From contig JAAOMT010000295.1 of the NCBI GenBank assembly GCA_016748015.1, forward strand, positions 1 through 64,000: a DNA stretch of 64,000 bases. Direction: 5' to 3'. This DNA is from Geosiphon pyriformis uo1 (Eukaryota > Fungi > Glomeromycota). The translations under genes and the position numbers were made by a program. The number at the start of each line of letters is the position of its first letter. The first letter of the stretch is position 1. Below the pieces are notes generated by a model, which saw only the letters and a list, made by a program, of their open reading frames with translations, had not been told where the DNA came from and did not search any database. Of this stretch, positions 31,926 through 61,640 are shown in pieces.

Positions 31926-33875
31926 ATAGATCCAGTAAGCACTTCTGCTGATAATTCTGGTACTGGTTTGGCTGGATTGGGAACTTGGTCTAGTGGTAAG
32001 AAAAAAGCTCATGTGGATAGTGTGTATTTCTATGGTCCATTATTTAAGAAGCCGAAAATGTCTGTAGCCAGTGAAGTAGTTAATTTGTCTGCTGGCTCTC
32101 TGAGCTTGGAAGATATTGGTAGTGCTGGTATTAAGCCTGTGGTGTCCTGAGGCAGCAAAGTTGGCAGTGTTTCTAGCAGTATAAGCAGTTTCTTAGATGT
32201 CAAAAATATAGAGAACATGGTTGCCGAAGAAACCAGTTACACTGAATCTGGTGAGAACAATAATATAGATGAAGTGATACCAAAAAAGACTCATACACAA
32301 ACATATGTGTTGGACAACCTACCAAAGAAGCTTTTATTTGAACAAGTGAGTGATGATAATATTAAGTTGGTGTTTCCAGCATTTAAATTTGTTGGATCCA
32401 ATCAGCTGCCATCTGCCAAGTTATGTGTCTTGGAAAAACAATGTTTTGAGCCAGTAAAATTGTTTGCTTTGAATGTAGAATTGTCTGCTGTGTCTGGAAA
32501 GACCAATAATAATAAGTTAATCTTAGTTAAAAAATTTTTTTATTGAATTAATGGTTTTGGAGGAGCTTCTACTTCTTTAAAATTTTTTGGAATTATTAGA
32601 TCTTTTTTTATATCTGAATTGAGTCTAAAGAAAACTAGAGAATTAGCAATTCATGAGAAAATTGTAGTGAATGTTGATGTTAGACAGGTAAATAAACATT
32701 TGGATTGGGTAATTGTTGTTAAGGAGATTCTGGTTGATCTTTCTAAATTGGCTGTAAAATTTGTTTTTTCTAAGTTTGAAAAGATTGTATCAATCAAGAT
32801 GCAACTGATTGGTCTGTGGCAGAAAGCTTTAGTGGAGTTTGAGTCATCTGAAATAGCTGATTTGGTCACAGCTAGATGGTCTGTTTTTATGAAAAAGGAT
32901 TCTGTTTATGTGGCAAAAGCTGTTAATGATAAACAATTGTGAGTTTCTAGGGATTTATATTGGACATTGCTTTATACTTTTCCAGTTGATACAATAGCTT
33001 ATGATCTTTTTGATTTGTTGGAATCATATGGTGGGAAGACTTGTTTCATTGGCTGTAATCCCAGCTCATATATGTGCAATAGATGTGCAATAGTGTATTT
33101 TGTTGATAAGGCATCAAAATCAGCTGCTATTGGTTCTACTTTAGTGTTTAAGAGTGTGAATTTGCACTGGGCTGGTCTTTCTTTGGCCTGTTGTGCTCAT
33201 TGCAAACAGTTTGGTCATATTTCTACAGAGTGTTTATTGGCTGAAAATTCTGGTGCTCATGCTAAGCAGATGGTAACTCCTCAGAATTAGGTCCATTTGG
33301 TCAACATATATAAGAAGAAACAGGCACCAATTGTTTGCCCAGTCTTTTTTGGTAGGAAAACTTGGGCCCAGGTTGTTAGTAGTTCTTTCTTTCATGTGGT
33401 TTTATCAAATCTTTTTGGTACTGGTTTATTTTTAAGTGCAAAACCTGTCTCATTGGTTTCTAATTCCCTTGGTAATTCTTGTTTAGTTAATCGATTGGCT
33501 CTTCTGAAATGCTTTTTGGAGCTTTTGACGGATCAAGTTTTAGTTATTATGAAGAAATTGAGCTTTGTGGAATTGGTGCCTCTGGCATTCAAACCTTGTG
33601 TCTCTTTTCTAGTTGTCCTTACACCCATTATGTCTAATTTGAACTCAGAAATGGCTTTGGATGATACACTGGCATCTTCTTCTCTCTCTCTTTCAGTTGT
33701 TGTTGCAGACTCAGTTGCTGATCTTAGTTTAAGTAGTTCTAAAGTTTTGACCACCAAGATGAGTAGATTAGAATCCAAAATAGTGGCTTTGGAAGTATCA
33801 GTTGAATCTGTTTTGGAAAGATTAGATTGTATGTGCTCTGGCTTAGGCTTGTTATCTTTTTTTCCTCCTCAATGA
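31926..33875 (+). pseudogene. LINE ORF1 (RRM-like region, CCHC zinc knuckle, C-terminal coiled coil) with premature stops
   Basis: Five ORF-track fragments all in one frame; CAHCKQFGHISTEC knuckle; start codon apparently mutated to ATA at 31926. Confidence 0.85.
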
Positions 33876-36800
33876 GTAACTTTGTGTGGAAAATAGTAAT
33901 GTGTAATATTCGAGATATCAATGTTTCTGCCAAGCAAAAGGACATTATCTGTTGGCATAGAAATTCTGAAAATTTGGTTTTGATAATTACAAAGACAAAG
34001 CTGAGGTCTAGCAACAGGCTTTGAATTAAGAATAAGTTTGATAGAATCAGGGTTTTTTTATCTGGATTGGACAAGAGTTTTCTTGGTGCTGGAGTCACAA
34101 TTATTATGAACATTTTACTAGCTCATCATGTTTATAAGATTTTTGAGGTGCCTGGTCAGCTCCTTTTGGTCAAGCTGTTATTTAAAAATAAACTTTCTGT
34201 GTCTATTTTGGGGCTTTATGTTGGGACATCTCTGGCTGTTCATTTTTTTCAAACCAATATTATCAATTCTATGATAGCAAAGACAGTTAATGAATCATTA
34301 TTTGTGGTCTTGGATAGTAACTTCAATAAAGATGGCTCCCGAAGGTGTGCTAGTTTTAAAAAATGTCTAGATCTTGGTTTGATCAATTCCTTGGGTGGAA
34401 GTTTTCATGTCAAAATGCTCACATGAGTTAACTCTTGGGGCATGGCTAAGACTATTGATTTCTTGTTTATTTTTTCAAACTTGGTCAATGCTGTGGTGAA
34501 TTGTGGGATGTTTAATGTTGATGAATTTTTTGATATTAATCATCAGGCCATTTTTGTATCTGTGGGTTTGGATGGACTTTTGAATATGTAGTTGAATTCT
34601 CTTTACAAGCAAGCAAATAAGAATCAGTAAAAGTTTGATTTTAAAGGTGCTGATAAGAATAAATAGAACAATTTCAAAGGTGCTATATTGGCCAATGCTA
34701 CAATGTTTTCAAATGAGTTTGTTACCTCTGCAAGATTTTCAAATTTGGATGTGATGTGGGATACTGTTTGCAAAATAATGGTTCTTTTAGCTAATGAAAT
34801 ATTTAAGAAAAAATGATTTAAGGGCTTTAATAATGTTTTCACCAAGAAATCTTTATGGTTTCACAAGTTAGAGCTCTTGGTTTCTAGGATTGTCAGAGCT
34901 TCATGTGAGAAGTGTATTGTGAATTTTGATTCTCTTATGAGATGCTGGGTTTTTTTGGACAATGTTAAGACTTCAGTCATTCAGGATATTGTAAGCTCTG
35001 GTGCTGGCTCTGATTGTATTCATTCTGCTCTCTTTAGTGTTAGAAAGTCTTATTGCACTGCCAAGTTTGCTGAATCTCTAAGGGCTAAAGAAACAAACAT
35101 CAGATTAGCTATTAATAGAAGGATGGAAAGTTTTGATGTTAATAAAGGTCATACAATTAGAAGTGTGCTGGAGTGTCTTTTTTGCAAGATGTCATTCAAC
35201 CATCTGGTGGTTAATAATAAACTGATTCTGAAACCTGATTTGGTTAAGTCTAAAGTAGATGTGATCATAAAAGGTTGGACTAAGAAACACAAAGTAGTAG
35301 ATAATATCTCTGGTAACTGGTGCTGTCAATATTAATCACTGGAGTATGTTTTCGATAAGGCTTTTTCTGGTGTTATGAATTCAATTAGATTTAATAAGTT
35401 GGTTGGAGTGGTTTCTGATCTGCCTGATAACAAAGCTGTTGGTCTCTTAGGTGTGTCAAATGAGCTTTGGAAACATTGTGATAAGTCAGTTTTGGATATG
35501 CTTTTGGTGCTTTTGAATTCTTGTTTGTTTAGTAAATTTGTGCTAAGCTCTTAAAAAAAGACTTAGGTCTCAATGATTCCCAAACCATATGAGTGGGAGG
35601 GTGTTTTGACAAATACCCATCCTATTGCTTTAATTAAAATTGCTCACAAAATTCTTTCCAAAATTTTCTCTGACAGGATTTTTTTGGCATGCAACACTTT
35701 TGATGTTCTTCATGAGAACAATTTTTTGGTTTTAAAGGGTACATTGACTCAGTCTCTTATTTTTGCTATTGATTCAGTTGTTAAGAATGCTTTGAAAAAA
35801 GACCAGAAGCTTTGGTTGGTTTTACAAGACATGCATAAGGCATATGATTTAGTTGGCTGGGAACATCTTGAGAAAGGTTTAATCAGGATCAAAATGTGTA
35901 GCAAGTTCATTTGATTTTTTGGTAATATTTATAGAGATTGCACCAACAGAGTAATGACAGATTTTGGTTTGACAAATGATTATTATGTGCATGATAGTTT
36001 GGATTAAGGAGAGATGTTTTTCTCCCTTCTGTAGTGTATATTTTATGACCCTTTATTGTATAAAGTCAAGCATCAGAAGAATATATGTGGATATAGATTG
36101 AATTTTCATTTTATTTCCAAAAGTAGTCATGCTGAATTTCAGGCTGGGCTTTTTTCATTTTTTGCTGCTGGTGCTTTCATTAATGATACAATTTGGGTTG
36201 GTAGCAGTCAGAGGGCTATTCAACACATTCTTAATATTGTTAGTGAGTTTTTTCAGATTAATGACATTTCTATTAATAATAATAAGATGGTGGCCATTTC
36301 CATCAACAGCAGAATCAGCAATTCTTCTCTTTTTATCAGTGATTCGCCTATCTCTATTGCCAAAAAGGATGAGTCTTATCAGTATCTGGGTATTTTTCCT
36401 TCAACTTAGGATCTTTTAAAGCCTAGTTTGGCTAAGATGTATTCAGATATTCGTTTTTTTACCAATCTGGTCCTGAGGAAAGCTGTTTCAGATAAGCAAT
36501 TCTTGTATTTGGTATCAGCAGTTCTTTATCCTATTGTCAATTATAGGACTCAGTTTAGCTTTGTTCCTGTTAGTATGTGCAATAAATGGGATGCTCTAAT
36601 TTATAGAGACTTGAAACTTAAGTCTGGTTTGCCTCTTGACTTTCCTAATAATATAATATACTATTTTTTATTTTATGATCTAAAGTCTTTCTTGCAAATT
36701 CAATCTGAAAGTAAAATTGCTTTACTTGTTAGCTTTGTAAACTCTGGTGGGATTTTGGGTTATTTGTTCTTTCACCAGTCGCATAACTTATAAGTTCACT

Positions 36801-38509
36801 GTTGGCACTCTGTTCATCTATTGGTCTTTTCGGTTCATATTTGTATTAGTGTCTCTAATAATTTTCTATTAGGCATGATTCATATTCTTCTTAATTGTGA
36901 TTTATCTCTGAGTAGTTCTTTGGCCAATTTTTTTCAGTTTCGTGATGAAGTGTTCATGTCAGTTGTTCTAGATGAATTAAAGTTTGTCAAGTTTCTCTTT
37001 TCTCTTCAGTAGTATAGTATTGCTTTTGTGAAACAACTTTGTGATCATCATGGTGCTGTTTTTGATTGGTACACTTTTAAGTAGTGGAAAAGATTGGACC
37101 CCCGTGGCTTTGTTCTGGAATGGTTTAAGCTATCTGTTGTATTTCTTAATAATGTAACTTTGTTTCCGACTCAACTCTTGGCTGTATATGATAGTGGTTC
37201 TTTGAACATTCTTGGGTCTAATAACTTTGTGTCTATTTGTGATTATCTTTCGCAGATTAATACTAGTGTTTTGTCTGTATATATGGATGGATCTTTGAAG
37301 AATCTGAGCACAGCTAGCTGTAAAGCTAGTGCTGCTGTCTTTTTTGAGGACATTGATTTGGGTTTAGGTGTTGGTATATTAGGTTTGATGTTTTCTACTC
37401 TGGCTGAATTGCAAGCTATTGTATTGGCTTTGGAATGTGTTCTCTCATCTAGTTCTATTTGCTTGTTTTCAGATAGTCAATCTGTTTTAGATGCTTACAG
37501 ATCAGAATTGGGTCTGGTGTGTCCTGATTTTCATAATCAGTGTTGGGTTGAGTGTTGACATATTGTTAATATTATCCGTGGTAAGAATTTGAGGATTAGT
37601 TAGCATAAGATAAAAGATCATTCTGGTGTTTTGGGAAATGAACACGCTGACATGATTACTGGTGCCGCCTCTCTTTTAGATTGATGTCTTCCTTTTCACT
37701 TGAATGAACACTTTATTGTAGCTAATTATGGTATAGTTTCTGACAATTCTAAGCACTTTGTGCATGATATTTATCATTCCATATATCATGTGTATTGGAA
37801 AGTTGGTTTTGGTTCAAAGTTCTTAAGAAGTGGTTTACTTTCTAATGTTGACTAGATTCACTTTTCATTGGTGTGGCATCCTGATTTGCACATGGCTACT
37901 GGCTTTACCAGCTGATTGTTAGCAAATGTGTGCACATACTTTATGAAGGCTTTATATCATTGTTTGCCTATTGCCATTCAAAAGCATTTTTATTATAGAC
38001 TTTATCCCAGTGTATTGTGCTTATCTTGTGGTGACATAGAAGTATCAGATCATGCATTCTCTTGTAGAGTTAACAAGTATGCTCACCATTAGTTGTTAGA
38101 TTCTCACATGGACTTTTGAAAGGCACTTTCTGGCTTTGCCTATTCTTTTTCATGTGTATTGCAGCTGTTGTTATTCTGTACTTTTAGTTTTTCTGTGTTT
38201 ATGGCTCTCTTCAAGGGTTTTGTTTTTGATGGTTGGTTTGGCGAAGCTGTTTCTGTTTTTTGTGATCTCAAGGTTGCTGGTATGGAGGTTATTAAATTTG
38301 TATATTCTTTCAATATGGCTTTTAGAGATAATATATGGTTGGTTTGTGCTAAGCACTACGTCTATATGGAAAAAAATGGTTTAATTTCTCTTGATGGTTT
38401 GGTGCCTGTCTTAATTTTTGGTTTGACTTCGAGGTTTTCTGTTGGTATATTAAGACTGTTCGGCATTGCTGATGCTTTTGGTATATATTTTGGTTTTTTC
38501 GGATATTAA
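33872..38509 (+). pseudogene. LINE ORF2 (AP endonuclease, reverse transcriptase, RNase H, CCHC) with premature stops
   Basis: Nine fragments in one frame. EN: CNIRDIN, TKTKL, LDSNFN. RT: MIPKP, THPIAL, LQDMHKAYDLV, AFINDT (decayed FVDD). RNase H: YMDGS, AELQAI, FSDSQ, HSGVLGNEHAD. C-terminal CLSCG...HAFSC. The ATG overlaps the ORF1 stop (ATGA). Confidence 0.9.
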
Positions 38510-38683
38510 TGGTTTAATATCTGTTTATATTACTGCATAGTGTTGTTTTGATTGGCCTGAATGGCTGGTCATATGTAGAAAGTGCATGATTCACACTTAG
38601 TTTAGATTATTTCTTTGATGTATAGCACTAGACTGTATTTGGACTTCACTCATTAAATAATAATAATAAAAAAATTATGTTTA

Positions 38684-47790: not shown

Positions 47791-48381
47791 TTATAAAAAA
47801 AATTGTGAGTAATCAATACTAAAATTTTCAAAATTAATTTTGAAATAGTTTGTCTGCCTTAAAATTTCAAAAAGTGATACGAATTCATCCTGGAGAGCTG
47901 GGTAGAAATCAATCTCAGCAGCAATGGCCACGTGATATAAATCAAATATTTCATTATCGACTGGAATTTCTGGAATAAACACAGGAGTGGAAGAGAAATC
48001 AATCCCGCCAGTATGGACCTGATATAAATTAATTGTCTCATTGGAGACTGGAATGGACATACGATGCGAAATTTGATTTGCAATAAGTCTATAAACATTC
48101 TTAGCATCTTCATTAAAGTCCTCTCATAATTTTGAAGCCTCCTTTGAGAGTTGTCGCATTGAAAGTTGAAATCCAATTCCCAGGAGTTCTCTGTAAAGTT
48201 TGTTTCGAAAGAGAATAAAAGCATTGACTAATTTTCTCTCTTCGAGTAAAGAGGAATATTCTGCAATTATGGGTCTTGAAAGGGCAGGTTTTAAAGCTTC
48301 TAATTGCTCAGTAGTTGGAAGGTTTTGGATTCCTCTAGGATTTCTTGTCAGTGGCAAGGCCCAATAGTGTATTTTATACAT
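47791..48381 (-). pseudogene. MATA_HMG-type HMG-box transcription factor gene with one nonsense codon (TGA 48124-48126 at the conserved Trp)
   Basis: KLVNAFILFRNKLY...MRQLSKEASKL*EDFNEDAKNVYRLIA; ORFs 48124-48381 and 47791-48060 share a frame, giving 196 codons on read-through. Confidence 0.85.
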
Positions 48382-50469: not shown

Positions 50470-51794
50470 TTACATATAATCCCTATTTATAGTCGGCTCA
50501 TTCAATGCGCTATACGTTTCTAAATCAAAGTCTTCTAAATATTCTTGACTCAAGAGCTGAGAAAGCCAGTTAATTTTTCTTTTCAAATTTTTGATTTCAT
50601 CTGCATCAACTGCAAACATCGAATTATTGTTTAACTTTGATAACGGAGAATGAGATGGCAATCGATTAATTTGGAAATATGGAATATCAACGAATGTATC
50701 ATTTTGTAGGGACGAAGTCGAAGAAGGATTATGTGAAATGTCTCCATATTTAGACTCTAGTTTCATGCGGTTTTTCTTAGCGTCAGGGGAGCTTTTGAGA
50801 AGATATTTTTGGATAATGCCCCAAGACTTAAATTTCCCAGGACCAAAAAGAACTAACCATATTGTAGAAGTAAAGGTTAAAAAGCCACCGAAGGACGATA
50901 TGAAGTTAATCAAACTATAAGCTTTATTTTCCGTATATTTGGTGACCTTCGAAGATAATATTAAAATTTTAATTTGCGTTCTTGACAATGTTATGACCTT
51001 AGTTTAAATAATTTTGGTAGACTTACCAAAAAATCAGTTGGATAAAACCAAATTTCTAATATCAATGCATCATCTGTTAAATATTCTTTTATCTTTTCGC
51101 TCTCTGTATACCAATGACTATATCCTTCAACATCAACCCTCTCAATCACTTTGAACGTGTACTCATTCAAACTGCCGCCTTTCAAATCATATATGTTCTC
51201 CTCTTGATCATTATCAAGCCCTACATATGTAACAAATAAGAAACCAATTTTTGAATTTTTTGAATTAAAAATTTGACTGTTAAGGGTTTGTCGAGCAATC
51301 AACTGAGTTAGATTACGCCAAAATTTGATCCTAATAGATTCGATTCCTACTGGGTAATAAATTAATCTCGGGTCATTTAAGCGCTCGAATCTTAAACAAT
51401 TAGAGTTGTCAAGTCCTTCTAAAGGCTCCAATTTAACTCGCGTCGAATTCGATGATGTCCCATTAATAAAAATATAATCAGTATTTATATTATTATTATT
51501 ATTATTATTATTATCTACCATTTGATATTCTATTGTAATTTTCTCCACGTAATTAGTTACATTTTGTTTTATGCAAATAGATGCGTCTGGGACTGGAATA
51601 CCACTTTTAGATTTATCGTTAAGCAGAGAAATAGATATTAATGGTTCCTGGTTTTTAAATAGTTTTTTAAAGTTTGGAATTGATGCGACGATAATAAGTC
51701 CATAAAGAGTAATATAGACTAAAAGACGAAGCCTCATTTCTCGGTTTCGCTTTAAAAAGTTGAAACTTATTTTTTTAAACCATTTTGAAATCAT
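50470..51794 (-). CDS. Two-TM membrane protein, type A (DEG/ENaC/PAC-like topology), 414 aa, intact
   Basis: Exons 51027-51794 and 50470-50946, phase-0 intron 50947-51026. TM1 LLVYITLYGLIIVASIP; PLISIS...IPVPDASIC; YTENKAYSLINFISSFGG then TM2; FGPGKFKSWGIIQ. Confidence 0.85.
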
Positions 51795-52115
51795 GGTTTC
51801 TTTAGAATGATTTGGAGGAAGTATAGAGTGTTTTCGTATTAATAAAAAAGAGTAAGTATAAATGGAGAAAAGCTACAGTGTATATTGTGATATATAATGA
51901 TATCAAAAAAAAAAAATTCTCATTATATTAGGGCTGATAGGAAAAACTAGGGAAAACTATTAAAAGATAAAGTTGTTAAAGATCTTTTTGTTAAATGAAA
52001 TATACAGAAAATTTAAAAAATTGAATTTTCTATAAACATGTTTTTCTTGGGATAAATTAATCACGACAAGAATTAAATTTTGATTTGTTAGAGACAGGCA
52101 CAAATAAATACATTA

Positions 52116-52116
<1 letters not shown>

Positions 52117-52161
<45 letters not shown>
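52117..52161. repeat. (TTA)n microsatellite in the A/B divergent intergenic region
   Basis: Visible directly. Confidence 0.9.
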
Positions 52162-52163
<2 letters not shown>

Positions 52164-52660
52164 ATCTTCAGGAAAAAAATTCACCATGATAAATGGCCTA
52201 ATATCAATGACGAAAAACAGTTTATCTTGAGTAACCAAACAAATAAAATCAAAAAAAAACTATTTTTATTATCATAAATATTTTTACTTTCATTATAGTA
52301 TTAAACTTTTGAGCATTTATCCGATATAATCTTTGAATATCCAAAATTGTCATATTTGTCTTGGAAATCTCATGAAAACAACCTTTTCTTAATCGGATGA
52401 TTGATCCTCAAATTGTTTACTTGATGTTTCTACAAATCGCCTTTACAGAGAATTTCCAAAGGATTTTTATCTGACACCACCAAATTGAACAAGAAAAAAT
52501 TCTTATTAAACTCTCCATTTACTAAAATCCTTGAAGATTACAAGCAAATGTAACTTTAATCTCATATATTTTTGTAACTAAAACCCATTCAATTGAATTG
52601 CGTCTGCTTGATTTTTTCTCGGCTATTTTTTCCTTTACTCTGTACCAAATCCAATTTAAA

Positions 52661-54036
52661 ATGAAGGGTTGTCATTCGCTCCCAAAGTTAACCACCGAAC
52701 TAATAATTCGCTTCATATTGGGCATCAGTATTTTATTAATAATTGTCTTCATGACAATTCCCAACTTTTTCAAACTTTTGGTTCATCAAGACACATTAGT
52801 TTCAATCTCTATAAACAAGGATAAATCAGAAACTGGTATACCAGCACCAAATGCCCTACTCTGTCCAAATGAGACAATATTCCCTTATTTGAAGGGTGTA
52901 GAATTTAATACATTTGAATCGCAAGCAGAAAATTCAATCCTTCTTTCCTCTGTTTATATTGATTTACAGAATTATACATCATCCCCAGATGAAATACTGA
53001 CTTTAAGAGAAATAAATGAAAAGTCTAAATGTTTAGCTTTTGTTCCTGATGGTCGTTTGATATATACCTTAAAAGAACTTTCATTTGTTGAGCTCAATGT
53101 CTATCAAAATGAGCAAGTGAATAAAAACACCTTTGGGGAAAATGCAGAGTTTGGAACTATATGGGTGACCTATGATCCAGTCAATAACACCTATCAAGAG
53201 AGAGATTCAGTTAAAATTAAACTACACTATAAAACCAATATCGATTTAAATCCAACAGAAAGAATAGATGTGCATAAAAAAAGTCATTGGTATAAAAGCG
53301 TTCCAGAGCGTTTAGAAGAATTCCCGCTTCCCCAATCTTCTATTTCAGTTAAAATTCGGTTTTATCCGATTAATTTTCTGGTAAGTTTTGAAATAAAGAT
53401 TGATTATTTCAAAATTCAGGTTTTTATAACTATCTAATCTTTTAATGACTTCATTCGTGAAATTAGGTAACGCAATACACAGAAAAAAACGAGGTTACCT
53501 GGATTGATCTTTTTACTGGTATTGGTGGTTTATTTACATATGCCTCAGGATTGTGGAAATTATTATTTGGTCGTGGACGCTTTAAATCATGGGGTATTAT
53601 TCAACAATACATTCTCAAAACTGCACCAAACGCTAATAAACGAAGACGAGAAAAAATCCAAGATTCACCAATATTACCAATACAAACTTTTTCAAAGAAT
53701 CTCTATTCATCAAGCGAACAATCTCAGAGTGATACATTAAATAGCACCCCAACACTATTATATGTCTATAATTCTGGTAAACATTTTCGATGCAACTTCG
53801 ATAATACTAGCGAGAAATCCAGCATTAGTGGTGAAAGTTCATACTCAGAGAAAAGTATCCATTCTTGCAATCGCATACCAAAAATAGCTTTAGATTTTGG
53901 AAATACCGATGAACGAACGGTGGCAGATAATTTAAAGGTATTGCAAAGGGAAGTGAAATTAATTGAAAAACTGTTAAATAAAGAGTATTTAGAAGGATTT
54001 GATTTAGAAACTTTTGATAAGATAAATCGAATTTAA
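52661..54036 (+). CDS. Two-TM membrane protein, type B (paralog of A), 429 aa, intact
   Basis: Exons 52661-53380 and 53467-54036, phase-0 intron 53381-53466 at the same position as in A. TM1 FILGISILLIIVFMTIP; TLVSIS...IPAPNALLC; YTEKNEVTWIDLFTGIGG then TM2. Confidence 0.85.
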
Positions 54037-55143: not shown

Positions 55144-56461
55144 TCAAACCACTACCCAATCATCATCCTCGTTTTCAGCTTGAGCAACATTCGCAGCGTA
55201 TAGATTAAGATCATACGCTTGATCCTTTAACAAACCTTTGATCATCGTAAAGTCTTTGTCTAAAATTTGGCGAGCAAATTCAACCTCAATTTCATCCCCG
55301 ATTTCCTCGATAACACTTCGGCCAGATCTCAAAGCATCTTCCATTGCATTGGCAATTTTACAGAAATTGGTTCCAAAATAGCTCCAGATATCGCGAAAAG
55401 ATCTCATAGTATCCGCTAATTCTTTGGTATCTTCCCCGATAGACATTATTTCGTATCGTGTTAGTTCGATAATACCGAGCTTTCTTTTAAGTTCCTCCCT
55501 TTTTTGACAAAGCATTTTTGTTTTCTTCCAACCATCTAAAAAATTTTCAAATCACAAGTTCTAGAAAATTAGAAAAAATCCAAAGAGAAATCCACAGAAT
55601 AAGTTTAAATTACCATTATATTTCTCTAAATCATCGTTAATTGTTTCCGAGACCTCGTCAAAAACTTCTGCCACTTTTGTTATTGATTTTCTTACTCTCA
55701 TTGTACTCTCACAAGAACCGACAAAAATTTGTGCCATTATATTCACGAAGGCGAATCCAAGTTGACCAACTGATGCTGACCATTTCATTAAACATTTATT
55801 CATATTTGCTTTTACTTTAATAAGTTCGTTTTGGACTTGATCAATTTCTTTTGAGAGCGTGGTTTTATCTTCAAGACCATAATTCACCTCATATTGAGTG
55901 AGAAACAGGTCAGCCTTGTCACCGAGAAGCTCAAATTCACTTTGAATTTTTGATGTTTCGAAATTTTTCGTTTTAATTGTCTAGGTGGGAGTGAGAAAGT
56001 GAAAAAAAATTACGAATTTACGCGAATCCTTTGGATACCCTAATTTGAAAAAATACCGGTATAGTATCTCTTAAAAATTTTAACTTTCTTTGAATTGAGA
56101 AACCATCTGCTTGGATCGTCGGCAAAATGACATCGCTAAACCGAGTTAAAAAGGCGCTTAATATCCCAGCTTGATCTTTCGAGTCACGTAAAAGATTTCG
56201 CCAATTTTGTTGAAGAGTTGGCCAATCTGTACTGTGATCGAGTTTCTTTACTCCAGGTTGGAGGAAAATTTTTTCTAGATTGAAGCGCACACAGTCAAAA
56301 CTTTGATCTATCTTTTGTGCTTTTAACGTGATTTCGTTAATTTTAGGGTTCAAATTTCTATCGGCTTCATAAGTTTCTACGATTTTCTGTTCGAAATCTT
56401 TTTTCTGGTTATTGGAGGGATCAAATTTTACAAGTTGAGATTCATTGAACGAGTTATTCAT
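55144..56461 (-). CDS. All-alpha cytosolic protein, possibly ClyA/Hbl/XaxA-like pore-forming toxin fold; 3 exons, 387 aa; C-terminal LIR/AIM
   Basis: Exons 56057-56461, 55614-55980 and 55144-55535 splice in frame (1164 nt). Long amphipathic helices flank the hydrophobic segment WSASVGQLGFAFVNIMAQIFVG; ends EDDDWVVV. Gene model solid, fold tentative. Confidence 0.7.
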
Positions 56462-58180
56462 GACTAGCTTAAATTTAAGGATTAATTTGAACACGGATAA
56501 TATGCTTCAGAGTAGATAGTTGAAAATTTAAAGCTTAGCAAAACAACAATAGCTTTTATTGAAAATCATTCACAATAATTCAAAGAAAATAAGAAAAACA
56601 AGAATTCAACCAGTTTGTGTTTACATTCTAATTCCGTCTAGAATTTTTAATTATAAGCCACTGTTTGGTTTTTAATATTGCCTAAATTCATTGTTTTTTA
56701 TTTGTAACAATTACTTGAGAAAATACTTGGGAATTTTGTTCGCATAACTAGCCAAACTAGGGAAACGATGTGTGTGTAAACCGGCTAGTGAGATCGATAT
56801 CATCTATGAAAATTATTATATACAATGATTTCCTAATTGATTTTTTGTGCATAAGAATCCCCTTGAATGCTATATCTCATAAATTAAGGTTATGCATAAG
56901 AGAAAAGCTGATTGTTGTAGAGATAAATGATTGAATTGAACCTTTATTTAGTAAACAAAAACTTTTGATTATGAAGCATTGTTGGTATCTAGTATTGTAA
57001 GCTTTTTTTAATATTATTTTTGGAGAAAAAAAAAACTTGTTTCACTTAACATTGAAGTCACGAGAATACTATCCTTTCACAACCAAAATTTATTAGAAAA
57101 ATTCAAGGTTTAAGCTTTTTTCGGCAAAAAGTTATGATAAAATTAAAAATATTCATATTATCAAATATAATTTATTTAAACCAAGTTTTCAGGATTTTAA
57201 GAAATAGGCAATAAATTTTTAAATTAAACCTTTTTATGTATACTATAAATAATCAAATATATCTGATATTCTAAAAAAAAAATTTTTATCTGATTCAAAA
57301 GCGAAAGCATTTTAATTTTTTGTTTATCTCCTGATTTGGTAAATCCAAAAAACCAAAAGTGTGAGAAAAAAAGTTGCCTAATCTTTCAAAATAATATTAA
57401 AAGATTGGTGGATTTAATAATTCCCTAAAAGTTGGCAATTCCTCGATTAGAAATTATGAGAAAAATGACTTAGACTGAAAGATTATGTAATAATCTGCAC
57501 CATAACTTCTGATGAAAATTAACAAATGATTTCTGCTCAATTAAAGGTTGCTGTTATTAGAAACATTTGATTTAAAATTGAATTTCAAAAGAGCTATTAA
57601 AACTTTTTTATAATTTTAAAGGAAATCCCAATAATCTCAAAAGGATTTCATATTAAAAATAATATTAACATAAAATAAATATTCCATGTACATTGTGACA
57701 ATCAAAAATTACTTTCTTATTTTCGAATTTTAGATTTAGAAAAAAATTCTAAAGTAAAATCATTTCTTGTTGAGTTTTTTTCAACAATATGAAATAATGA
57801 TTTATATAAAGTATAAAAATAAATGTTTTTCTAAACATTATAAGATTTGCTGGTTGAGAAATTATTAGATTTTTGAGCATGATACTAAATAATTTTTTCT
57901 GACTTTGGTAAATTTTTAACTTTTTCGAAAGAATTACCCTAAATATTGCATTCATTATATCTGAAACCTTAAAATGCTTATTCAAACTTAATTCTATTTA
58001 AATCAAACCTCAATATATATGAAAATATTATGTTTTTACTCTTCTGTTCTTGAATTCTTTTGACTTCAAAATTGTGATTTTAAAAATTGAATTATTTAAT
58101 TTGGATATTCATAGAAATTCCGACTCAAATAAATTTTTAACTTATTATTAATAAAGTAGCTATTAAAACCTAACATAAAG

Positions 58181-59585
58181 TCATTTTTTACCATTAGAAG
58201 TCTGACCCGTCTTATCAAAAGTTCCTAAATCAAATCCTTTTAAATACTCTTGATCTAATATTTTTTCAATTAAGTTCACTTTCCTTTGCAATACCTTCAA
58301 ATCATCTGTAAACATTTTTTGATGGCTATTTTCACAATCTAAAGCTATTTTTGATAAGCGATTGCAGGACTGGATACTTTTCTCTAAGTATGAACTTTCA
58401 CCAATAATGCTGGATTTCTCGCTAGTACTATCAAAGTTGCATCGAAAAGTTTCCCCAAAATTAGGTGTAGATAAAAAGGTTGAGGTACTATTTAATGTAT
58501 CACTCTGAGATTGTCGCTTAAAGAATAGAGATTCATTGAAAAAGTTTGTATTGATAATATTGGTGAATCTTGGATTTTTTCTCGTCTTCGTTTATTTGCG
58601 TTTGGTGCAGTTTTGAGAATGTATTGTTGCATAATACCCCATGATTTAAAACTTCCAGGACCGAATAATAATATCCACAATCCTGAGGCATATGTAAATA
58701 AACCACCAATACCAGTAAAAAGATCAATCCAGGTAAACTCGTTTTTTTCCATGTATTGCGTTACCTAATTTCACGAATGAAGTCATTAAAAAATTAGATG
58801 GCTATAAAAATCTGAATTTTGAAATGATCAATCTTAATTTCAAAACCTACCAAAGAATTAATCGGATAAATCCAAACCTCAATCAAAGTGAAAGGTTCTT
58901 TTATGTTTGGATCTTCTTTAAAATTGTCCGGGAAATTTTTGTACCAATGGCTATTTCCCCTCACATTTATTATTTCAGTTGGATCTAAGGTGATGGCAGT
59001 AAGATGGTTTGGCCTGATTTTAACTGATTCTCGCTCTTGATAAGTGCCATTAACTGAATCATATGTAACCCATACAAAGCCAAACTGTTCTTTCTGCCAC
59101 ATTTGCTGAAAATCATCTATTTTACTATTATACTCATTTTGATAAAATACTATTCTAACATTCTCCACTTTTTGATAATATTTCAGAGAACCATCAGGTC
59201 TAAAAGCTAAACATTTAAACTTTGGACCGATTTCTCGTAAAATCAATCTTGGTTCATTTGATGATGATCTATTATTATTTTCCAGATCAAAAAAACCAAA
59301 AATAATTTCTTCGCTTTTATCCAAAACAGTTATATTATTAAAAACGGTTATATTTTTTAAATAAGGGAATATTTTTATATTTAGACAGAGCAAGGCGTTT
59401 GGTACTGGTATACCAGTTTCCGATTTATTCTTGTTTATAGAGATTGAAACTAAGGGGTCTTGATATATGAAAACTTTGGAAAAGTTAGGAATTGTCATGG
59501 CGACGATTATTGAGAAAATACTAAGGCTAAATATGAACCGAATTTTCAGCTCAGTATTGAACTTTGGGAATGAATGACGAAACAT
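58181..59585 (-). pseudogene. Type B' two-TM protein copy with a 1-nt deletion in the cytosolic tail (truncated allele or pseudogene)
   Basis: Exon 1 58851-59585, intron 58765-58850. agcgacaatct vs agcgaacaatct in B near 58514 gives an early stop at 58492; homology continues to EYLKGFDLGTFDK and TGA at 58181. Confidence 0.8.
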
Positions 59586-60335
59586 TATTTTAAGTTTAAA
59601 TGGTGAAAGTAAAAAAGAAAATTGAGCGGATCCAATTTGATTGAGTTAGTTTTATATTCAATAGATTAAATTTATGCCTGCTTTTAGTCTTTCGAAGTTT
59701 TTTTTACTAAAAAAAAGGTTAGTGAAAATATTTCTTAATATGTTATTAAATAAGGATATTATGATAATTTTTTATATAAATTTTAAAAATAAATAAATAA
59801 ATTTTCGAGGAACAATCATTTCCACCAATGTTTTCCATTCGGTGCAACAATTGAATCTGTTATGGAAATGTTTGCCTATAAAAAATTAATATTTTTTCAA
59901 TGATAGGTAGTTTTGGATAATTAATACCAATTGTCCGTTAAAATTTTTTTCATTTTTAAAAGTTTAATACTATCTCAAAATAAAAAAAATTTTAATTATT
60001 AATTTAATCTTATCCTTGTTTTCTCAAAATCTGAAATAAATTTTTATTATTCTCAATTAGTTCATAGTAAAGTCATTGGCAAGTTTAAAACTTTAAAAAA
60101 AAACAAAGAATTCATTGGTACCTCTATTTTGGTGAAAATTTTATTCAACATTTTTACTCCTCGGTTCAAGTTTTTTCCTATCTACAAAATAAAAAAATTG
60201 AATTTCATGATATCTGCGATTACATCAATTTTAAGAAAGTTTTTATATATATAAATATGTCTTTTTTATCATTTTCAACTTTATATTCAGTGCTAAAATA
60301 TATTATATTTATCTTTGAAAAACGCTAGAAAAACT

Positions 60336-61640
60336 ATGATTTCAAAGCTTTTTAGAAAAACAGGTTCCTTTAACTTCTTAAAACGAAATCCAGAACTACG
60401 GATTCGTCTTTTAATTTGGATCACTCTTTGTGCAATCATTATTGTCGTCTCAACTCCAAACTTTATAAAACTATTTAAATACCAAAAACCATCAATATCT
60501 TTACCCGTACTTAGTGATAGATCTATCATTGGTGTTCCAATTCCAGATGTATGCATTTGCGTATTTGAAACGGCCATAGAAAAAGTGACAATAGATTATC
60601 AAATGGCGGATAATAATATAGCCTCAGATTATATTTTTATGAATGGGACAGCATCAAATTCTACAAGAGTTAAATTCAACTTTCGTGAAGAATATCCAAT
60701 CCCATGTTTATTATTTCAGCGATCAAATGACCCGAGGCTGATTTATAAACCATTAGGAATAAAATCGATTAGAATCAGATTTTGGCGTAATCTAATTCGA
60801 CAAACTCCTTTGAAAGCTCGAATAATTGGTTTCTTTTATACTACATATGTAGAGATTGACATTAATCCAGGTTTTAAAACATTCGAAATAATGGACGGTG
60901 GTCTGTATAAGTTCACATTCAATGCGATTGAGAAGATTGATGTAGAAGGAAATAGTCACTGGTACCAAAATTTTGAGAATAAAACGCCTCAGCTTAGTCC
61001 AGGAAATAATACATTACTATGTGAGATTCGTTATTCTCTAATCAATTTTTTGGTATGTTTCTATGATAGATCTTTATCCACGCCCAATTAATGATCAAAT
61101 AAAGCATTCATATTATCTTCAAAGGTCCCAAGATATACGGAAAAGAAAGCTTATAATTTAATTGACTTTATTTCGTCCCTTGGTAGTTTGTTAACCTTTA
61201 CTTCTACAATATGATTGGTTCTTTTTGGTCCTGGGAAATTTAAGTCTTGGGGCATTATCCAAAAATATCTTCTCGAAAGCTCCCCTGATGCTAAGAAAAA
61301 TCGCAAGAAAACAGAGTCTAAATATGGAGACATTTCACATAATCTTTCTTCGACTTCGGCCCTACAAAATGATACATTCGTTGATATTCCATATTTCCAA
61401 GTTAATCGATTGCCATCTCATTCTCCATTATCAGAGTTAAACAATAATTCGATGTTGGGGGTTGATATAATGAGTCATTCAAATGAGAGATGGAAAATGA
61501 CTCCGTCGTTTGCAGCTCAAATGGATGAGATTGAGGTTTTGAAAAGAAAAGTTAAATTACTTTCTCAGCTTTTGAGTAAAAAATATTTGCAAGGTTTCAA
61601 TTCAGAAACTTATAGCGCATTGAATGAGCCGACCAAATAA
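60336..61640 (+). pseudogene. Type A' two-TM protein copy with TGG>TGA nonsense codon in TM2 (61212-61214)
   Basis: Exon 1 60336-61052, intron 61053-61124. Exon 2 reads YTEKKAYNLIDFISSLGSLLTFTSTI*LVLFGPGKF, where A has TIWLVLFG. Confidence 0.82.

Follow-up and report, generated by a model that had tools for sequence, protein, structure and literature searches.

A head-to-head gene pair of Geosiphon pyriformis represents an uncharacterised fungal family with a predicted DEG/ENaC/PAC-like fold

We analysed a stretch of 64,000 nucleotides from the symbiotic fungus Geosiphon pyriformis uo1 (contig JAAOMT010000295.1, positions 1 to 64,000; hereafter the window), in which two divergently transcribed genes, A and B, encode two-pass membrane proteins of a fungal family whose predicted fold resembles that of the DEG/ENaC and PAC ion channels. 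Both genes lie where a preliminary description of the sequence had placed them, and their reading frames and splice sites are intact. The product of A has 414 residues (exons 51794-51027 and 50946-50470), that of B has 429, and the two are about 30% identical. The features of the locus are as follows.

51027..51794, minus strand: gene A exon 1, 256 codons; basic N-terminus, first transmembrane helix (TM1) and bulk of the ectodomain
51657..51734, minus strand: A TM1 (residues 21-46), starting at a near-invariant Arg (92% of the family)
51573..51575, minus strand: A Cys74, end of IPVPxxxxC, aligned to the FPAVTxC-type Cys of FaNaC and BRTNaC1
51396..51398, minus strand: A Cys133, in the family motif CxxFxP, co-occurring with Cys74 across homologs
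50947..51026, minus strand: gene A intron, 80 nt, GT-AG, phase 0, at the beta11/beta12 junction
50470..50946, minus strand: gene A exon 2; beta12, second transmembrane helix (TM2), LFG..WG..Q motif and cytoplasmic tail with a conserved terminal helix
50845..50913, minus strand: A TM2 (residues 268-290), with a near-invariant GG and a stripe of small residues
50809..50832, minus strand: A FKSWGIIQ, carrying the family signature WG..Q, start of a short cytoplasmic helix after TM2
51795..52660, unstranded: A-B intergenic region, 866 bp, head-to-head; putative shared promoter
52661..53380, plus strand: gene B exon 1, 240 codons; TM1 (about 52703-52759), Cys68, Cys124 and ectodomain
53381..53466, plus strand: gene B intron, 86 nt, GT-AG, phase 0, in the same position as in A
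53467..54036, plus strand: gene B exon 2; beta12, TM2 (about 53500-53568), WG motif and tail with terminal helix

The public models agree with these structures: G9A89_013811 has splices identical to those of B as read here, and G9A89_013810 has the same splices as A, with gene A exon 1 being 100% identical. The public A model nevertheless begins 19 codons late, omitting 51737-51794 of the minus strand; its start Met is a Leu in the paralogs, and the 19 omitted codons are conserved among them. We searched the exons one by one and used the public proteins for full-length analyses; single exons gave no match in a Pfam search. The position of the intron is common to homologs in Ambispora and Diversispora.

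Hydropathy and the AF2 models place two transmembrane helices on either side of a single large ectodomain in both proteins, and the basic N-terminus together with the glycosylation sequons suggests an N-in/C-in orientation with cytoplasmic tails of 115-146 residues. All motifs listed in the preliminary description are found (basic N-terminus, TM1, (P/T)L(I/V)SIS, IPxPxxxxC, SHWY, YTE..GG and FGxGxFKSWGIIQ), and the ectodomain that it put at roughly 200 residues with sequons and two Cys measures 220 residues in A and 210 in B, with four and three sequons and the pairs C74/C133 and C68/C124, respectively. SHWY is present in both proteins but is restricted to the Geosiphon A/B clade and is not a mark of the family. 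The residue equivalent to the degenerin site is Ser273 in A and Thr257 in B. A Lys of B (K271; 53557-53559, plus strand) lies at the inner end of TM2 near the small-residue stripe and is Ile in the two closest paralogs.

A profile built from the Geosiphon copies matches 59 clusters at 50% identity in a HMMER scan of 1.84 billion proteins. This full scan was needed to recover the wider family, as word-indexed searches returned the Geosiphon copies and three Endogone proteins only. Named members belong to Mucoromycota and Zoopagomycota (Ambispora, Acaulospora, Diversispora, Funneliformis, Rhizophagus, Paraglomus, Mortierella, Entomortierella, Endogone, Phycomyces, Thamnocephalis, Syncephalis and Basidiobolus) and are without exception annotated as hypothetical proteins. 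At least 19 related ESM Atlas clusters share no common Pfam family, and those listed are mainly from Mucoromycota; no relatives of B were found in metagenome contigs and no viral structural match was found. The conserved columns comprise the Arg that opens TM1, IPVPxxxxC (its Cys kept in 81% of the family), CxxFxP, a Pro before beta12, the GG in TM2 (98%) and LFG..WG..Q after TM2, and many members close with a terminal helix of the form LE..L..xY. Both ectodomain Cys are present in 29 homologs, neither in 7 and a single one in 1, a count inflated by relatedness; this joint retention or loss suggests one disulfide, Cys74-Cys133 in A. Given that the same motifs are found across 59 clusters, that purifying selection acts on the TM2 exon and that Ambispora and Diversispora homologs share the intron position, the A and B motifs are not chance resemblances. 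We conclude that A and B are genuine genes with intact frames, and that they belong to a fungal family not yet characterised, whose predicted fold is that of DEG/ENaC/PAC; the finding is the family, of which the A/B locus is a rapidly evolving Geosiphon branch.

Further, distant Geosiphon paralogs lie on contigs C661, C639, C634, C718, C657 and C595. The one on C661 (267100-269000, minus strand) has multiple introns, adjoins histone H2B and carries a PPxY motif; it is annotated publicly as G9A89_013254 (1358 residues), a model that may be fused with a neighboring gene. In Ambispora gerdemannii a second family copy lies head to tail, ~2.2 kb downstream of CAG8573225.1 (10414-11145 of that locus).

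The fold predictions for A and B are confident. The predicted ectodomain (about 210-220 residues) is nearly all-beta and can be overlaid on the palm and beta-ball of both DEG/ENaC and PAC channels; it has the palm-like sheet linking TM1 and TM2 that the channel proposal of the preliminary description called for. Its closest structures are the DEG/ENaC channels PDPNaC1 (9jf7), FaNaC (7yvb), BRTNaC1 (8ymr) and ASIC1, from which the family differs in having an ectodomain of about 210 rather than 300-430 residues, few helices, usually two Cys and no Cys-rich helical thumb, in lacking the GAS belt, the HG motif and the Asp before IGG, and in adding the LFG..WG..Q motif and the terminal helix. The hairpin that we take to be beta9-beta10, naming the strands as in ASIC, has a five-residue turn in 26 of 43 members, and the model of the B ectodomain has no helix of four or more residues. 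As in PAC (TMEM206/ASOR, PF15122), a compact beta-rich ectodomain lies between two transmembrane helices, and the size of this small, Cys-poor ectodomain is indeed nearer to PAC, as first proposed; PAC functions with a similarly small ectodomain. The superposition on PAC is nonetheless looser (root-mean-square deviation of 4.7-5.6 Å, against 3.1-3.5 Å for the best DEG/ENaC structures), there is no match between sequence profiles, and the TM2 sequence follows DEG/ENaC instead. Erv41/Erv46 (ERGIC; PF07970, PF13850) scores lower structurally, with no profile match and no dilysine tail. Membership of P2X, whose likeness had also been raised, was rejected: it is not among the top 50 VIA rows, and P2X7 appears in Foldseek at E 7e-3 with a TM score of 0.16. 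The nearest named ESM Atlas clusters belong to the uncharacterised Y80K_N family (PF27811; ciliates and streptophytes; structure TM 0.65, features 0.87), a likeness seen in the Atlas output. Kelch-propeller ("galactose oxidase") proteins of Mucoromycota, about 1000 residues long, carry the same fold (ESM Atlas TM 0.68); a WW-domain cluster is a weak feature match in the Atlas.

Sequence comparison is independent of the structural models. No member scores above the cut-off of any Pfam family, and PF00858 (ASC) is the sole Pfam family matched by many members (13 of 43, best E 1e-4, below cut-off; 16 of 41 with the beta11-TM2 stretch alone), whereas the TMEM206 profile PF15122 matches 0 of 43 at E up to 1, and a scan of the Geosiphon genome with PF00858 gave no match. 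ERGIC membership was likewise rejected, as PF07970 and PF13850 match 0 of 43 and a dilysine end is absent from 68 proteins. In a PDB sequence search with the profile, six of eight matches are DEG/ENaC proteins (best FaNaC, E 0.018); PDB searches that started from a single homolog, from a small alignment, or from just the ectodomain or the middle strands gave nothing but noise. The profile aligns IPVP..C to the Cys motif after TM1 (FPAVTxC) of FaNaC, FaNaC1 and BRTNaC1 with weak domain scores, so that this DEG/ENaC hallmark is present in the degenerate form IPVPxxxxC. The second ectodomain Cys may correspond to the Cys of the DEG/ENaC CYTFN motif. The beta12-TM2 segment aligns without gaps to E..Y....L..DIGG, with the GG kept in 98%, but the Asp before IGG is absent in 43 of 43. 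Small residues at the degenerin-equivalent site, GG, GG+4 and GG+8 form a stripe of 100-degree periodicity in the DEG/ENaC register, and the filter Ser, already noted as lacking, is indeed missing: a GxS at the filter position occurs in 0 of 43, where the triplet is small-aliphatic-aromatic. The DEG/ENaC- and PAC-like signatures originally proposed thus hold as DEG/ENaC-type motifs inside a PAC-sized ectodomain, whereas strict membership of either family fails.

The A/B cassette occurs three times in the genome, twice in the window as a large inverted repeat (50470-54036 and 58200-61640, about 71-78% identity between arms) and once on C609. The second arm contains the following copies.

58492..59585, minus strand: B-prime, inverted duplicate of B; TM2 intact, tail shortened by a frameshift
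60336..61640, plus strand: A-prime, inverted duplicate of A; in-frame TGA in TM2 (61212-61214), probably a pseudogene

The head-to-head arrangement is kept in all three cassettes, and the 866-bp spacer is a putative shared promoter. A lone A lies on C778, with broken copies on C624, C609 and C482. Between the two window cassettes, identity is 86-94% in exon 2 and the B intron and only 68-78% in exon 1, which is nearer to that of the C609 cassette (83-86%). The inverted repeat is more similar in its outer than in its inner halves. These patterns suggest gene conversion of the TM2/tail halves. In a quick IQ-TREE phylogeny (SH-aLRT branch support only; three rows cover exon 1 alone), A and B form sister clades (98 and 100) that unite with support of 100, leaving Ambispora outside, within a subfamily (support 99) common to other Glomeromycotina and Mortierellaceae, and the window pair is the first branch in both clades. 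By this topology, and with the homologs sampled here, the split between A and B is specific to Geosiphon and the whole cassette was duplicated together; at the loci read, Ambispora, Diversispora and Mortierella carry their homologs singly or head to tail. Among paralogs, the ratio of nonsynonymous to synonymous substitution rates (dN/dS) is 0.16-0.51 in the TM2 exon, mostly 0.2-0.3, indicating purifying selection, and 0.42-1.16 in exon 1 (few sites).

From the fold, the topology, the conserved face of TM2 and the selection on its exon, we consider it reasonably probable that A and B are subunits of a minimal ion channel, and to this extent the trimeric channel family envisaged at the outset survives, though not as a strict member of DEG/ENaC or PAC. 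By the known architecture of these channels, three subunits would pack through their palm sheets and three TM2 helices would line a central pore closed near GG; ligand binding or protonation in the fast-changing upper ectodomain may move the palm strands and open the pore, while the WG..Q and terminal helices may act on the cytoplasmic side in assembly or regulation. Given a channel, copying of the cassette as a unit suggests co-expression and perhaps A/B heterotrimers, which we regard as possible though not favored. Since the GAS belt, the HG motif and the thumb are all missing, the pore would be expected to select weakly and to be gated otherwise than through the acidic pocket of ASIC. Several observations weigh against a channel: no member reaches the curated PF00858 cut-off (best reported 18.8 against 23.6 bits); the GAS belt (G-x-S in TM2) is found in 0 of 43 members, with bulky W/Y/F in place of Ser, the Asp before IGG in 0 of 43 and the pre-TM1 HG motif in 0 of 26; Erv41p, a non-channel, appears to share the fold, and TM2 of the genome's Erv46 faintly resembles that of the family (hhalign P 0.007, probability 6%); relatedness inflates the tally of joint Cys loss; and the one RNA run, probably DNA and uninformative, yielded one 227-nt contig with no splice joints. 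Loss of GAS and HG is compatible with a channel, since the functional channel PDPNaC1 is without HG, remains selective when its GAS is mutated and is constricted at a Gly above GAS (PMC12714832).

The absence of filter, HG and gate residues would suit a non-conducting surface receptor or sensor that uses the channel fold as a ligand-binding scaffold and signals through the cytoplasmic WG..Q and terminal helices. The most conserved family-specific motifs are cytoplasmic, the ectodomains diverge fast and the fold recurs in the kelch-propeller proteins; we hold this reading to be unlikely, if the most serious of the rivals. That the two proteins serve as a trafficking receptor early in the secretory pathway, bound to each other as obligate partners in the manner of Erv41/Erv46, appears less probable still: the genome has its own Erv41/46 genes (on C392 and C631), which the family hidden Markov model does not score, the TM2 likeness is faint, and in place of a short retrieval tail A and B have long ones, a dilysine C-terminus occurring in 0 of 68 proteins. 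It is also conceivable that the family functions in other fungi while the Geosiphon genes are a decaying, lineage-specific expansion of little function, as their long branches, the stop in A-prime, the truncation of B-prime, the broken copies and the lack of RNA support might indicate; we judge this very improbable given the undamaged frames and splice sites of A and B, their full set of core motifs, their confident folds and their constrained TM2 exon.

Elsewhere in the window, a gene in about three exons lies between the two cassettes (55144-56494, minus strand), its pieces without significant Pfam match. Open reading frame pieces at 47791-48381 (minus strand) resemble an HMG-box (MATA-like) protein by eye, also without Pfam match, and a GC-richer, strongly skewed stretch at about 32000-38600 (plus strand) with broken reverse-transcriptase-like open reading frames is probably a degenerate LINE (long interspersed nuclear element).

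We found no description of this family in full-text literature, a search outside which most subscription papers lie, so that prior mention is possible. A 2023 BLAST survey that included Fungi reported non-animal DEG/ENaC proteins from heterokonts and a filasterean relative alone, without deciding between loss and lateral transfer (PMC10507113); the "ion channel" expansion of Rhizophagus is TRPV-like, a different group (PMC10234402). The predicted fold of the family matches that of animal acid- and peptide-gated channels, with conduction as a candidate function only, and its spread across Glomeromycotina, Mortierellaceae, Endogonales, Mucorales and Zoopagomycota would favor an old eukaryotic origin with divergence beyond the range of BLAST. 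More speculatively, and with little confidence, the family and Y80K_N may form a third, widespread DEG/ENaC-PAC branch of minimal and possibly ancestral design, ligand-gated in early-branching fungi and in some cases fused to kelch propellers as receptor-channels, in which a heterotrimer of A and B, specific to Geosiphon and rapidly changing in its ectodomain, would respond to an outside signal, perhaps one from the cyanobacterial partner. The single homologs of culturable Mortierella are open to direct testing. Should these proteins be channels, they would give arbuscular mycorrhizal fungi a further candidate class of sensory channel and provide a natural minimal design, without thumb, GAS or HG, showing what the fold needs to gate and select.
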